Sequence record: MW812343.1
Length of the DNA: 64,000 nucleotides
Direction: 5' to 3' (one strand)
The translations under genes and the position numbers were made by a program. Under the pieces are notes generated by a model. That model had not been told where the DNA came from and did not search any database. It saw only the letters and a program-made list of their open reading frames with translations. Every line of letters begins with the position of its first letter. The first letter of the stretch is position 1. Of this stretch, positions 4,038-57,682 are shown piece after piece.

Positions 4038-4116
4038 TCGGAAACCCGATTTGATGTTGCACAGGGCGTTACGCTGCGGCGTTTGCCGGTGTGCAGGGTT
4101 AGGTCGGGGTTCTGGC
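4037..4116 (+). ncRNA. 80-nt hairpin RNA at 5' end of tRNA operon
   Basis: GTCGGAAACCCGATTT pairs with AGGTCGGGGTTCTGGC (15 of 16 pairs incl. GU); inner TGCAC/GTGCA stem. Confidence 0.5.
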
Positions 4117-4124
4117 ACCTATTC

Positions 4125-4210
4125 GGGGGTGTTCCAGAGCGGTCAAATGGAGCAGACTGTAAATCTGTTGACTTCGGTCTTCGGTGGTTCAAATCCATCC
4201 ACCCCCACCA
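4125..4210 (+). tRNA. trnY: tRNA-Tyr(GTA)
   Basis: Type II cloverleaf, loop CT-GTA-AA, variable arm GACTTCGGTC, CCA. Confidence 0.95.
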
Positions 4211-4277
4211 AATACAAGAACGTCGGCCTGCGGTTAAGGACTAGCCTCCTTTTCTAGCGCCGATGGGATTCCTTCCG

Positions 4278-4357
4278 TCTGCGGGGAGTATCGTTCGGTC
4301 AGGGCGAAGCAATCCTGACCCGAGTGTGTTGTAGGCTACAACATGCAAGCAGAACCA
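4278..4357 (+). ncRNA. two-hairpin RNA with ACCA 3' tail
   Basis: TCTGC/GCAGA closing stem plus A-CCA; hairpins GGTCAGG/CCTGACC and GTGTGTTGTA/TACAACATGC; followed by the AACA spacer seen after true tRNAs. Confidence 0.5.
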
Positions 4358-4363
4358 AACAGT

Positions 4364-4438
4364 TGGGGTATAGCCAAGCGGTAAGGCCCAGGGCTTTGAT
4401 CCCTGTATGCCTAGGTTCGATTCCTAGTGCCCCTGCCA
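4364..4438 (+). tRNA. trnQ: tRNA-Gln(TTG)
   Basis: TGGGGTATAGCCAAGCGGTAAGGC 5' end typical of Gln, loop CT-TTG-AT, CCA. Confidence 0.93.
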
Positions 4439-4444
4439 AACAAC

Positions 4445-4527
4445 GGAAGTAAATCTCGCTGCTTCGGAAACTCATGGTGAAAAACCCGTGACCTTCCAGG
4501 CCGGTGCTATACCGGATGCTTCCACCA
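4445..4527 (+). ncRNA. non-canonical tRNA-like RNA (8-nt anticodon loop, divergent T loop, ACCA)
   Basis: GGAAGTA/TGCTTCC acceptor plus A-CCA; T-arm-like CCGG-TGCTATA-CCGG; TCATGG/CCGTGA stem with TGAAAAAC loop. Confidence 0.6.
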
Positions 4528-4533
4528 AACAAT

Positions 4534-4754
4534 GGTACCTGTCACAGCAGCCCTTGAGGCTTACGCGAAGATGACTGGCCGCCCATTTTTACCGGGTAAC
4601 ACATTCCTGCCTGCGTGCTATTGCCGCTAAGGTTTGTCCCTGGTGTCGTGCGTCATTCGGGTCTACCCATGCTCTGCGGAGTGTGCGCTGATGTCTCGAT
4701 AAACGCCATAGGGCCGCCTTGAGAACTCCGTGGAATTCGGAGGGGTACCACCCA
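4534..4754 (+). ncRNA. 221-nt RNA with tRNA-like ends (tmRNA-like topology)
   Basis: GGTACCT/GGGTACC acceptor, adjacent T-arm CTCCG-TGGAATT-CGGAG, tail ACCCA; 9-bp helix 4577-4586/4708-4718 in place of the anticodon arm. Confidence 0.55.
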
Positions 4755-4825
4755 TTCTTGTGTTTCCTTATCCTGAAGACATTCGTAAGACAAATCTATT
4801 CATGGTCGAGGAAGCACAGAACCCA
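4755..4825 (+). ncRNA. long-stem hairpin RNA ending CCCA
   Basis: TTCTTGTGTTTCCTT/GAGGAAGCACAGAA 14-bp stem with one bulge, then CCCA. Confidence 0.45.
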
Positions 4826-4828
4826 TTT

Positions 4829-4903
4829 AGGACTGTAGTTCAGTGGGAGAACGCCGCCCTGTCACGGCGGAGGTCGCGGGTTCGAAACCCGTCAGTCCTG
4901 CCA
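4829..4903 (+). tRNA. trnD: tRNA-Asp(GTC)
   Basis: AGGACTG/CAGTCCT, loop CT-GTC-AC, G discriminator, CCA. Confidence 0.95.
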
Positions 4904-4911
4904 GTTTCAAA

Positions 4912-4987
4912 TGCGTCTTAGCTCAGTTGGTAGAGCGCACCCCTGATAAGGGTGAGGTCACTGGTTCAAGTCCAGTAGATGCAACCA
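4912..4987 (+). tRNA. trnI: tRNA-Ile(GAT)
   Basis: Canonical D arm AGCTCAGTTGGTAGAGC, loop CT-GAT-AA, CCA. Confidence 0.95.
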
Positions 4988-4993
4988 AACAAC

Positions 4994-5071
4994 GGTGTAT
5001 GTAGTTCAGTTGGTTAGAATTCCGGCTTGTGACGTCGGAGGTCGAGAGTTCAAGTCTCTCCATACACCCCA
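4994..5071 (+). tRNA. trnH: tRNA-His(GTG)
   Basis: G-1 paired with C73, loop TT-GTG-AC, CCA. Confidence 0.95.
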
Positions 5072-5077
5072 AACAAT

Positions 5078-5153
5078 TCTCCCGTCATCTAGCGGTCTAG
5101 GATACCGGCCTTTCACGTCGGGCACACGAGTTCAAATCTCGTCGGGAGAACCA
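5078..5153 (+). tRNA. trnE: tRNA-Glu(TTC)
   Basis: TCTCCCG/CGGGAGA, loop CT-TTC-AC, CCA. Confidence 0.95.
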
Positions 5154-5158
5154 TTTAT

Positions 5159-5249
5159 AGAGAATTGACTGAGTTGGTTTAAGGTGCTCCCCTGCTAAGG
5201 GAGTGTATGCGAAAGTGTACCATTGGTTCGAATCCAATATTCTCTGCCA
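5159..5249 (+). tRNA. trnS: tRNA-Ser(GCT)
   Basis: Type II, loop CT-GCT-AA, long variable arm, G discriminator, CCA. Confidence 0.95.
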
Positions 5250-5252
5250 AAC

Positions 5253-5322
5253 AACGGTAAGCAAAACTGTGATGCACTGTGCTCGCGAACAGACTAGGTG
5301 GGTTAGAATCCCATAACCGTTG
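5253..5322 (+). pseudogene. degenerate tRNA-like element (CGC triplet in 8-nt loop)
   Basis: AACGGT/ACCGTT acceptor, GTGGG-TTAGAAT-CCCAT T arm, CTGT/ACAG stem, no CCA. Confidence 0.5.
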
Positions 5323-5364
5323 ACCGTGTTCTCTTGCTGTGGGAAATAGAAGCGAACGTAGAAA

Positions 5365-5443
5365 CGCCGGTTAGCTCAAAGCTTAGAGCGTCTCATCTTC
5401 GGATGAGAAGGTTGGGGGCGCAACCCGAATTCCCTATCGGCAA
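5365..5443 (+). ncRNA. tRNA-shaped RNA with UUCG-capped stem replacing the anticodon loop
   Basis: Canonical TAGCTCA..AGAGC D arm; TCTCATC-TTCG-GATGAGA; GCCGGT/ATCGGC acceptor; expanded T loop. Confidence 0.55.
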
Positions 5444-5509
5444 TGGCCTGCTTGTCAGGATTAGAAACATCTACGTGGATGGGAACTTCTACAGCGAGAA
5501 CAAAACAAT

Positions 5510-5582
5510 GGGAGTATTGCCCACAGTGGCACCGGCAAAGGTTTCGTACCTTGCGGGTTGGGCGGAAGCCCGATACTCCCCC
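5510..5582 (+). ncRNA. tRNA-shaped RNA with 8-bp acceptor and GGAA-tetraloop T arm
   Basis: GGGAGTAT/ATACTCCC; TGCC/GGCA arm; AAGG-TTTCGTA-CCTT arm; TGGGC-GGAA-GCCCG arm; preceded by AAACAAT spacer. Confidence 0.55.
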
Positions 5583-5826
5583 GAACGCTGGCCTTCTGGC
5601 CGATACAGTGAAAGCTTACCCTTGCCGTTGATCACCTCTTCTGCTGCTGCTGCCAACACACTGTATCACCGGAATCAGTCCTGCCTTAAATGGCAAGCGT
5701 TCACCCATTCGGTTCCCCAAGGCGGCTTGGGACATTATCTCTCGGCTCTGTTGGGTAATGTCGTGGTTAACCTTTTCTCAGATAGATATTATCACCAAGA
5801 TAATACAACCTATTTGAGAGGTAGAC

Positions 5827-6345
5827 ATGAAAGATCTAATACTACCACCTGGTGATTGGGCACCGTGTCCGGATGCCCCTGACCTGTTTATGGTCTCCCG
5901 TAAAGGAGAACTGTTTTCACTTCGTTCGAAAAGAATAGTATCCCAAAGCCGGTCAGGAAACGGGTATGTATCTCACGTCACGAAGGTTGGTGGGCGTAAA
6001 GGGAAGAACTTGGTATTGAAACCGCATATCCAAGTCGCCAAGGCTTTTCATCCCAACCCTGAAAATAAACCAGAGGTTAACCACAAAAACGGAATCAAGA
6101 CTTGCAATGAGGATTGGAACGTTGAGTGGGCAACCAGACAGGAAAACGTAGACCATTCTATCGAGAACAATCTCAGAAAATCTAATGGTCTTAAATTATC
6201 AGGCCCTGAAATCCGGGAATTGTTAGAAAGTCCGATAGGTAATGTGAGAGAGTGTGCAGAAGCATTGAACGTACATCACACTACAGTAGTGAAGATTAGA
6301 AATAATCCAGCGCATTACTTATTGATGACCATGACTAAAAAGTAA
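5827..6345 (+). CDS. HNH homing endonuclease (NUMOD4/HNH_3-like)
   Basis: HIQVAKAFHPNPENKPEVNHKNGIKTCNEDWNVEWATRQEN motif; inserted in the tRNA cluster. Confidence 0.9.
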   Translation: MKDLILPPGDWAPCPDAPDLFMVSRKGELFSLRSKRIVSQSRSGNGYVSHVTKVGGRKGKNLVLKPHIQVAKAFHPNPENKPEVNHKNGIKTCNEDWNVEWATRQENVDHSIENNLRKSNGLKLSGPEIRELLESPIGNVRECAEALNVHHTTVVKIRNNPAHYLLMTMTKK

Positions 6346-6350
6346 ACAAT

Positions 6351-6442
6351 GGCTCCGTGGTGAAATCGGTAAACACAGGCTTTGAATAGCTGTCCAACGA
6401 TTGTATAATCGCGTGGTGTAGGTTCGAGTCCTACCGGAGCAA
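6351..6442 (+). pseudogene. degenerate type II tRNA (Leu/Ser-like body, distorted anticodon arm, no CCA)
   Basis: GCTCCG/CGGAGC acceptor, GTGGTGAAATCGGTAAACAC D arm, GGTTCGAGTCC T arm, irregular arm around TTTGAAT. Confidence 0.55.
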
Positions 6443-6443
6443 G

Positions 6444-6538
6444 AACGATGAAGTTAGAGGCATAAACACCCGACTCATAATCGGATAGTGGTTTACCCGG
6501 CGGGTACTCCTTCGCAGGTTCGAATCCTGTCATCGTTC
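6444..6538 (+). tRNA. atypical tRNA-Met/Ile2(CAT) with ~28-nt variable arm
   Basis: AACGATG/CATCGTT acceptor, loop CT-CAT-AA, GCAGG-TTCGAAT-CCTGT T arm, extra TACCC/GGGTA hairpin, no encoded CCA. Confidence 0.7.
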
Positions 6539-48528: not shown

Positions 48529-48993
48529 TTGTCGGGGCCAACTGAATTGTGGATGGTCTTGCCTTATCAATGGCCGGTACTCTCTCCAGAACAGATTGAC
48601 AACGATTTGAAGGGTGTTCGTCTTGGGGTGGAAACACCACCCCTAACGGCGTATCGCACCCCGTATGATGCTTTGAATGCGGGTGTGGCGTACGTTGCTG
48701 AGAAGAACCGCGTTATCGATTCCTTTAACCCCGGCAGTACCGTTGCACCCATGCAGCTTTCACGCAAGGGTGACGTGGTTAAAATCGTGAATCAGGGAAC
48801 GTGGAACACACTCACGAACGGCGATAAGATTTGTCTTTATCGTCTCAGCTCTGAACGCTGTTCTCAGCCTTGGCAAGAAACGTACGAAGGCTCCCAAGAA
48901 TATTTTACGCACGGTGTTGCAGAATATGACGAAGTTCAGTTCGATACACTGCGCAACTTGATTAGCAACGCGGGACTCACCCTCGTTAATTGA
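48529..48993 (+). CDS. hypothetical protein
   Basis: TTG start with GGGAG RBS. Confidence 0.7.
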   Translation: MSGPTELWMVLPYQWPVLSPEQIDNDLKGVRLGVETPPLTAYRTPYDALNAGVAYVAEKNRVIDSFNPGSTVAPMQLSRKGDVVKIVNQGTWNTLTNGDKICLYRLSSERCSQPWQETYEGSQEYFTHGVAEYDEVQFDTLRNLISNAGLTLVN

Positions 48994-56746: not shown

Positions 56747-57682
56747 ATGCCTATTCCAAACATGCTGTCGGTGCTCTTACCGAGCTTCGAAGCAACGAAT
56801 CTGAAAAACACGCTGAATGCAAACTGCGATGCCATCAGTGAATCACTGTTGCCACAGTTTGAAAGTATGCGTGACCTGGTCGGTAGCGAACAGGGGAAAC
56901 CGTTCCTCTCTAAGCCGGTACAACAGCTGAGCGAAGAGTTGGTGAAAATGATGCGCAGTTCTGGCCTCGAGGTCAAAGGTCTGCGCGATCCGTCTGCACT
57001 GGAATATATCATCGCCTCCATGCGCAATACGCTGGAGCTGCGTCCGTTTATTGAACAGTGCATTAACCGCGACATCGGTAAGCAAGTTGTTACCGCGTCA
57101 CTGACGTTCAACAAATCCACGCTCCTTCAATTGCTGGACCTCATTAACTTCTTTGTTCTTTACAGCGGTACGCTGATAAACTACATCACCGCCGAAGAAC
57201 TCGGCGCGGTGGAGAACTCGAACATCGCAGTGAAAGGTGTGGGTCCAAACGATTTGCAGTACCTCCATGTTCGCATGGTGACGTACGGCATCGCTTGTCG
57301 TGTTCTGGCTACGCCTCAGTCGAAGCTCAAAGCAGACTATGCGGATATCCCGGAAGCGGTATTTGACGAAGATACCTACAATGATCTGGTTAAGTCTTTC
57401 GGTTCGAAAGCGACCGATCCGTTGGGTCTCTCCGCGGTACCATTCCCGCTCTCTATCATTTATCGGATTAATCTGTCGTGGAATGAATGGCAGATGGACA
57501 ACTACGATGAAGTGTGTGAAGCGGCGAAAGCGGCCGAGTACCGTATCTTACTGTTCAAGAAACAGCAAGCGGAAGGCAAAGGCGACGCGGCGTTGGAAAT
57601 CCTTATCGAGAAACACGAAAAGCGTCTGGATTCCCTGAAACGCAAACGTGAGCGTCTGGCGAAAAAGAACGGTCTCGAATAA
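56747..57682 (+). CDS. virion head protein (phiKZ gp90-like)
   Basis: 311 aa; synteny. Confidence 0.7.
   Translation: MPIPNMLSVLLPSFEATNLKNTLNANCDAISESLLPQFESMRDLVGSEQGKPFLSKPVQQLSEELVKMMRSSGLEVKGLRDPSALEYIIASMRNTLELRPFIEQCINRDIGKQVVTASLTFNKSTLLQLLDLINFFVLYSGTLINYITAEELGAVENSNIAVKGVGPNDLQYLHVRMVTYGIACRVLATPQSKLKADYADIPEAVFDEDTYNDLVKSFGSKATDPLGLSAVPFPLSIIYRINLSWNEWQMDNYDEVCEAAKAAEYRILLFKKQQAEGKGDAALEILIEKHEKRLDSLKRKRERLAKKNGLE

Follow-up and report, generated by a model that had tools for sequence, protein, structure and literature searches.

A tRNA-like structured RNA gene in the tRNA arrays of Erwinia phage pEa_SNUABM_6 and related jumbo phages

The tRNA array of Erwinia phage pEa_SNUABM_6 (MW812343.1, Machinavirus, 240,164 bp) contains a real, conserved and structured RNA gene, which represents a new family not present in Rfam 15. 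It occupies positions 4534-4753 (plus strand) of the window, i.e. the whole stretch of 64,000 nucleotides that was analysed, whose base 1 is base 1 of the record. Comparison of its homologues showed that the element folds as a four-way, cloverleaf-like junction, in which a 7-bp acceptor stem and a 5-bp T arm form the 12-bp 'top half' of a tRNA.

Position and architecture of the element

The plus-strand tRNA array spans positions 4100-5300 of the window and, according to ARAGORN, includes tRNA-Tyr (4125-4210), tRNA-Gln (4364-4438) and tRNA-Asp (4829-4903), followed by the tRNAs for Ile, His, Glu and Ser. The 390 nt separating tRNA-Gln from tRNA-Asp carry no annotation in the record, and the element lies inside this gap, on the same strand as the tRNAs, a location within the tRNA cluster that is also a trait of the stable RNAs of the T4 RNAC/RNAD type. 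Such tRNA arrays are modular, with ACAAY spacers separating the units. In pEa_SNUABM_29, a 178-aa ORF (CDS 00159; locus L121 3323-3859, minus strand) was found between tRNA-Tyr and the element, which recalls the segB homing endonuclease contained in the T4 tRNA cluster.

All parts of the element are encoded on the plus strand. The leader AACAAU (4528-4533) lies directly upstream of G+1, with a proposed RNase P site at U4533/G4534, where cleavage is predicted. The 5' strand of the acceptor stem, GGUACCU (4534-4540), pairs with GGGUACC (4743-4749) and is followed by arm 1, a D-like arm (4541-4575) with a base stem formed by GUCA (4541-4544) and UGAC (4572-4575), an inner hairpin (4549-4552/4558-4561) and an invariant GA (4570-4571) just before its 3' strand. 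The place of the anticodon stem is occupied by a central helix, GGCCGCCC (4577-4584) pairing with GGGCCGCC (4711-4718), which carries a distal central arm (4585-4710), a lineage-specific expansion in which two hairpin domains lie at about 4591-4644 and 4648-4707 and positions 4675-4678 form a UGCG tetraloop. The junction linker UUGAGAA (4719-4725), at the position of the variable loop, is 6-7 nt long in all members and mostly ends in AA. It leads to the T arm CUCCG-UGGAAUU-CGGAG (4726-4742; stem 4726-4730/4738-4742), which abuts the acceptor directly. Finally, the 3' tail (4750-4753) consists of the discriminator A4750 followed by C4751, C4752 and C4753, the next base being A4754.

The acceptor abutting the T hairpin, the A followed by CCCA and the GUCA/UGAC D-like arm had already been recognised in a first-pass annotation of the sequence, and all are present. 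The 9-bp helix that it described at the place of the anticodon arm, likened to tmRNA P2, does exist there, but it comprises eight positions with one C.C mismatch instead of nine clean pairs.

The MFE fold of the element corresponds exactly to this four-way layout. Its fold energy is within chance for the composition (z = -1.17), and a loose motif scan gave about one chance look-alike per 240-kb genome, so that the one sequence by itself is no proof and the argument depends on comparison.

Homologues and covariation

Sixteen distinct homologues, ranging from 118 to 220 nt, came from phages of the genera Machina-, Erskine-, Wellington-, Seoul- and Moabitevirus and from metagenomic phage contigs, with a single copy in each genome; the length is about 220 nt in pEa_SNUABM_6 and 118-164 nt in the other genera. 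Within the Machinavirus clade, full-length copies were obtained by blastn (91-100% identity) in pEa_SNUABM_10, 42 and 43, Huxley, Machina, Parshik and Salmonella phage pSal-SNUABM-04. In Erskinevirus (phiEaH2, Stratton and Asesino), Wellingtonvirus (Kwan, Wellington and pEa_SNUABM_11) and Seoulvirus (SPAsTU and pEa_SNUABM_29), the blastn match was confined to the last ~50 nt. The copies of Serratia phages Moabite and Yaphecito were reached via the 5' part of the element, those of Serratia phage 2050HW, its relatives and Pectobacterium phage ParM-25 via the 3' part. Pattern scans contributed a further five contigs from IMG/VR and four from metagenomes, the latter, all from one sample series, being the only gain of the metagenome scan; none of the 30 matches to a looser IMG/VR pattern was confirmed by the covariance model. 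When the flanks of the homologues were read, the same architecture was seen in all of them (118-220 nt).

A covariance model (R1), built from an alignment of 15 sequences (A1), finds the element once, and only once, in each of the SNUABM_6, phiEaH2, SPAsTU, Moabite, Kwan and SNUABM_29 genomes, and also detects the divergent copy of 2050HW/ParM-25, at 42.8 bits. Model and motif scans of the pEa_SNUABM_6 genome gave no paralogue. The element is absent from SNUABM_4, SNUABM_9, ChrisDB and Caitlin, even with the model filters off, and since these phages are close relatives, it is dispensable in some settings. As for cellular genomes, 596 Gb of bacterial and archaeal sequence yielded no homologue: the 84 pattern matches, a number at chance level for 17 fixed bases, are either chance occurrences or cobalamin riboswitches. 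In Moabite, an annotated 41-aa 'hypothetical protein' with its ribosome-binding site (CPT_Moabite_078) overlies the element (locus L022 588-710), and this protein is probably a mis-annotation of the RNA. A search of the literature returned no description of the element. The phages that carry it belong to the nucleus-forming chimalliviruses, as has been shown for Asesino (PMC11724907).

Pairing was counted over a 21-pair core. In A1 (15 distinct sequences), 95.2% of the cells are paired and eight pairs have changed on both sides, vs. 38-52% of paired cells in slid controls, where partners were shifted by 1-3 columns. With the copy of 2050HW/ParM-25 added (A2, 16 distinct sequences), the paired cells reach 96.1% overall and nine pairs display compensatory changes, with a covariation score attained by none of 500 shuffles. 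It is therefore conservation together with covariation that lifts the element above chance. The acceptor/T-arm pairing, whose loss among homologues the first-pass annotation had named as fatal to its reading, is thus maintained.

At the level of individual helices, four of the seven acceptor pairs are compensatory across genera (e.g. G2-C71 to A-U and U3-A70 to C-G). The G-U pairs at acceptor positions 6 and 7, if read from the opposite strand, would become A-C, which indicates that the fold belongs to the plus-strand RNA. All four base pairs of arm 1 covary, the stem being GUCA/UGAC, GUUA/UAAC, GUCU/AGAC, UCCC/GGGA, GCAC/GUGC or AUCU/AGAU, and its distal part is variable, in 2050HW leaving no more than a 5-nt loop on the 4-bp stem. 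The T stem is invariant in 15 members and reads CUCAG/CUGAG in 2050HW and ParM-25, a compensatory change in which A-U replaces C-G. The sequence of the junction is conserved, including the GA before the 3' strand of arm 1, the base of the central helix, the linker, the T stem and U26 (C in 2050HW). As for the central helix, its sequence (GGCNGCC/GCNGCC) is kept in all members, 4580/4715 is always a non-Watson-Crick N.N pair (C.C or A.A), and there is no covariation; its pairing thus rests on the MFE folds of many members and is a plausible prediction.

The distal central arm is unrelated between genera, with 126 nt and two hairpin domains in Machinavirus vs. 28-60 nt elsewhere. These distal arms are well structured, often with UUCG-type tetraloops in the other genera, and in an RNAalifold analysis of four Machinavirus sequences the pair 4672/4681 was G-C, C-G or A-U.

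The T loop follows the pattern UGNRAUU in all members. Its two middle bases vary even among close relatives (GA, GG, AA, AG or CA), and are therefore not engaged in a base-specific tertiary pair. The hairpin CUCCG-UGNNAUU-CGGAG recurs in Desulfobulbaceae and relatives (loci L043, L096, L101 and about 30 others), within GGGAA...ACGGGCCC. These Desulfobulbaceae loci are cobalamin riboswitches according to Rfam (110-117 bits), with the hairpin inside the match, and the hairpin, a T-loop motif of the UGNRA type also met in RNase P and rRNA, is the only part shared with the element, which itself gave no match to the riboswitch model (RF00174) at E<=10. In the solved structures, the riboswitch hairpin folds as a T loop, which supports a T-loop fold in the element without the tRNA-specific U55-C56.

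Predicted RNA ends, neighbouring units and the T4 precedent

The sequence ACAA(U/C) precedes G+1 in every member read, with U-1 in most of them, and the spacer following the CCA of the neighbouring tRNAs is the same as this leader. Determinants of bacterial RNase P include U-1, the 12-bp acceptor/T stack and an N73-CC tail. The discriminator N73 is A in 14 of the 16 members, U in one and G in one, and the CC after it is invariant. Position 76 is C or U in 15 of the 16 members, A being found only in 2050HW/ParM-25, which has a full ACCA. As all ten canonical tRNAs of the window encode CCA, the rarity of A76 suggests that the mature 3' end of the element may be other than CCA. No CCA-adding enzyme was found in the five phage genomes searched, so that the host enzyme would be used for any completion; T4 tRNAs without an encoded CCA are likewise finished by host enzymes.

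Two metatranscriptomes yielded contigs that show neither ends nor levels of the RNA: one of 153 nt from wastewater (X18), identical to 4486-4638, and one of 316 nt from an aquatic sample (X19), covering 4519-4833 with eight differences. Both had zero depth at the non-RNA flank 4223-4345. A third run, probably of DNA, had a depth of 100 for a contig over 4466-4903 vs. 3.2 for 4159-4384. These contigs are at most a hint of expression, DNA carry-over being possible.

Several other tRNA-like units were noticed in the array. Directly upstream of the element, an 83-nt unit (4445-4527, plus strand) has GGAAGUA/UGCUUCC as its acceptor, CCGG-UGCUAUA-CCGG as a T-like hairpin and a terminal A-CCA, after which comes the AACAAU spacer. 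It has no ARAGORN or Rfam call and a fold z-score of -3.33; it is missing at that place in pEa_SNUABM_43, and its 3' end precedes tRNA-His in ChrisDB and pEa_SNUABM_9. Downstream of the element (4750-4828, plus strand), ACCCAUU occurs twice (4750-4756 and 4818-4824) around a spacer of about 68 nt, in which 4760-4768 and 4806-4814 form a 9-bp stem. Only about 6 nt separate the element from the next tRNA in phiEaH2, SPAsTU and Asesino, and the Machinavirus spacer hence looks like an insertion or a remnant unit. The gap after tRNA-Ser (5250-5826, plus strand) contains more unannotated units starting after AACAA(C/U), with acceptor-like closing stems such as GGGAGUAU...AUACUCCC.

Further on, two non-canonical tRNA-like genes are located at 6351-6442 and 6444-6538 (plus strand), with 35.6 and 40.9 bits, respectively, on the Rfam tRNA model; ARAGORN reports the first as 'tRNA-???', and the second ends in GCCC and not in CCA, like the element. 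Both are overlapped by the minus-strand CDS pEaSNUABM6_00018 (6315-6533), which may be spurious. Finally, a paralogous tRNA-like unit of 125 nt is present in 2050HW/ParM-25 (loci L152/L153 735-859, plus strand) and in the Moabite record (57219-57343), with an acceptor GACGCCU/GGGCGUC, an arm 1 GCAC/GUGC, a T arm CCAGG-UGCGAUU-CCUGG and A-CCC. It scores 22.8 bits on model R1 and has the UGNRAUU loop and the ACCC tail in common with the element, whereas its central arm is different.

The closest analogues of the element are RNAC (species 1) and RNAD (species 2) of phage T4, as a functional class and not as a homology family. Both are small stable RNAs, of 139 and 119 nt, whose genes, like the element, lie within a phage tRNA cluster and on the strand of the tRNAs. 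The 3' part of RNAC consists of a T arm and, after it, a closing helix resembling an acceptor, both of which are also found in the element. The T arm of RNAC is, however, the canonical GGUUCGAAUCC, vs. the UGNRAUU loop of the element family, the inner domains are different, and the carriers are Straboviridae as opposed to jumbo phages of the chimallivirus type; no resemblance was seen when the sequences were compared by eye. The roles of RNAC and RNAD were listed as unknown in papers of 2010 and 2022 (PMC3014915, PMC9697503), and an evolution study with a semi-permissive host described an rnaD homologue that had mutated convergently (PMC12685909).

Known RNA classes and the proposed role of the element

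Run with default settings, ARAGORN called neither a tRNA nor a tmRNA at the element, and a comparison with all 4227 Rfam families gave no match at the gathering score and, at E<=10, nothing but a chance match to a CRISPR repeat on the other strand (E = 0.32). The tmRNA and Y-RNA models that the first-pass annotation had suggested as a check were among those without a match. A protein-coding gene was ruled out, as no ORF over the element exceeds 46 aa and the indels among homologues are not multiples of three.

A tmRNA-derived RNA acting as an SmpB sponge, or a Y-RNA-like species binding Ro60, as initially put forward, is highly improbable. The element does resemble the tRNA-like domain of tmRNA in that an acceptor/T-arm top half, closed by the RNA ends, encloses a large insert, and 5' processing by RNase P is expected in both. 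It is, however, much shorter than tmRNA, and lacks the mRNA-like domain of tmRNA, with its conserved resume codon and tag ORF: since the insert (28-126 nt) differs entirely between genera, there is no conserved tag frame, and the first-pass annotation had seen no obvious tag either. No pseudoknot was detected. The lack of the G3:U70 alanine determinant, another of its observations, was borne out, the pair 3:70 being U-A in pEa_SNUABM_6 and, among the 16 members, U-A in four, C-G in 12 and never G-U. The T loop is UGNRAUU and not UUCRANY, and the one permuted tmRNA call that ARAGORN produced at a 70% threshold is spurious. In Y RNA and YrlA, the ends form the Ro-binding stem and the tRNA-like part is internal, which is the reverse of the topology seen here, where the ends form an acceptor stem. 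Without G3:U70, a tag frame and a canonical T loop, neither a tmRNA nor a Y-RNA origin is supported, while the tRNA-like topology and the new class that the first-pass annotation had kept as a fallback are. Still harder to credit is a true tRNA whose large intron or insertion would be spliced out to give a decoding tRNA. The element has much of a canonical tRNA, i.e. four arms in cloverleaf order, a place in a tRNA array, the 7/5 acceptor/T stack with a 7-nt loop, the G53-C61 closing pair, equivalents of U54 and A58, and a discriminator followed by CC, and ARAGORN, with introns allowed and thresholds lowered, made some calls. These calls nevertheless disagree between homologues in anticodon, strand and borders, and the tRNA model (RF00005) gave no match at E<=10. 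No arm with a conserved 7-nt anticodon loop tops the conserved helix, arm 1 is not a D arm, and the U8/N9 linker, the G18G19 D loop and U55-C56 are missing.

The reading that we favour, and hold to be probable, is a stable tRNA-like RNA without anticodon, cut from the transcript of the tRNA array, which does not decode and acts by tRNA mimicry. The element would be transcribed together with the phage tRNA array and released by host RNase P at G4534; trimming would shorten its 3' end to A73-CC, from which the host CCA-adding enzyme would make CCA. Lacking an anticodon loop, it cannot decode, and as the tRNA-like core is kept across five genera with the distal arm free to change, mimicry is its likely mode of action. 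The mimic would occupy a factor that reads the top half or the core of tRNAs, without entering translation, the candidates being a processing enzyme, a repair enzyme, or a toxin or immune nuclease of the host that attacks tRNAs. Host immune systems that cut the acceptor stems, D loops or anticodon loops of tRNAs have been documented (PMC12916289), which makes a decoy role conceivable. In its most specific form, in which the core would serve the nucleus-forming Enterobacterales jumbo phages as an RNA decoy, trapping or inhibiting a host factor directed at the acceptor/T-arm half or the core of tRNAs, this is a speculative proposal with a small chance of being right; a retron nuclease directed at the acceptor stem or D loop and a toxin modifying the CCA end are candidate targets.

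Two other explanations attribute less to the core. In one of them, which deserves some weight while being unlikely, the tRNA-like core is a mere handle for processing and stabilisation, for which the tRNA-miRNA units of MHV68 and mascRNA/MALAT1 are models, and the long central arm is the active part, binding a protein or a target RNA. The release of RNAs by RNase P through tRNA-like handles is an established principle (PMC8457004), and the central arm is the largest part of the element, well structured, with tetraloops and one covarying pair. Yet this arm is wholly different between genera (28-126 nt), whereas the core is conserved in sequence including its unpaired bases, and the longest complementarity of the element to the phage genome, 12 nt, is at chance level. 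The other explanation, a cis-acting punctuation that guides the cutting of the array, or a decaying tRNA gene without purpose, and in either case without a role in trans, appears rather improbable. It would suit the patchy presence among close relatives, the modular arrays with their ACAAY spacers and an element for which no function is known; a pseudogene would not, however, keep nine compensatory pairs, the T-loop pattern and the junction across five phage genera and four host genera, and the adjacent tRNAs have processing signals of their own.

A partner of the proposed mimic was sought by a phyletic profile over nine whole phage genomes, of which five have the element and four (SNUABM_4, SNUABM_9, ChrisDB and Caitlin) lack it. 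Only two real ORFs of pEa_SNUABM_6 were present in at least three of the four other genomes with the element and in none of those without: one of 154 aa (phrog_22066; window 48529-48993, plus strand) and one of 130 aa (phrog_11720; record MW812343.1 169498-169890, plus strand). Both occur in phiEaH2, SPAsTU and Kwan, belong to PHROGs of unknown function and have no Pfam match, and a search of the Atlas with the former gave no lead. The nine genomes being few and related, the profile was treated as a dead end.

Since the conserved part of the family is the tRNA-like core and not the large arm, RNase P cleavage, CCA completion and a partner recognising the shape of a tRNA are predicted. Phage tRNA arrays are usually annotated by tRNA finders only, and units such as this one are therefore missed; the alignment and the model of the family can be used in annotation pipelines. 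As a whole, the family constitutes a clear, covariation-supported case of tRNA mimicry in DNA phages, a second and independent system beside T4 RNAC and RNAD, and it connects with ongoing research into host immune systems directed against tRNAs. If the decoy proposal were true, the tRNA pool would be protected by an RNA that has no role in translation, a form of RNA counter-defence alongside the spare tRNAs of the phage.
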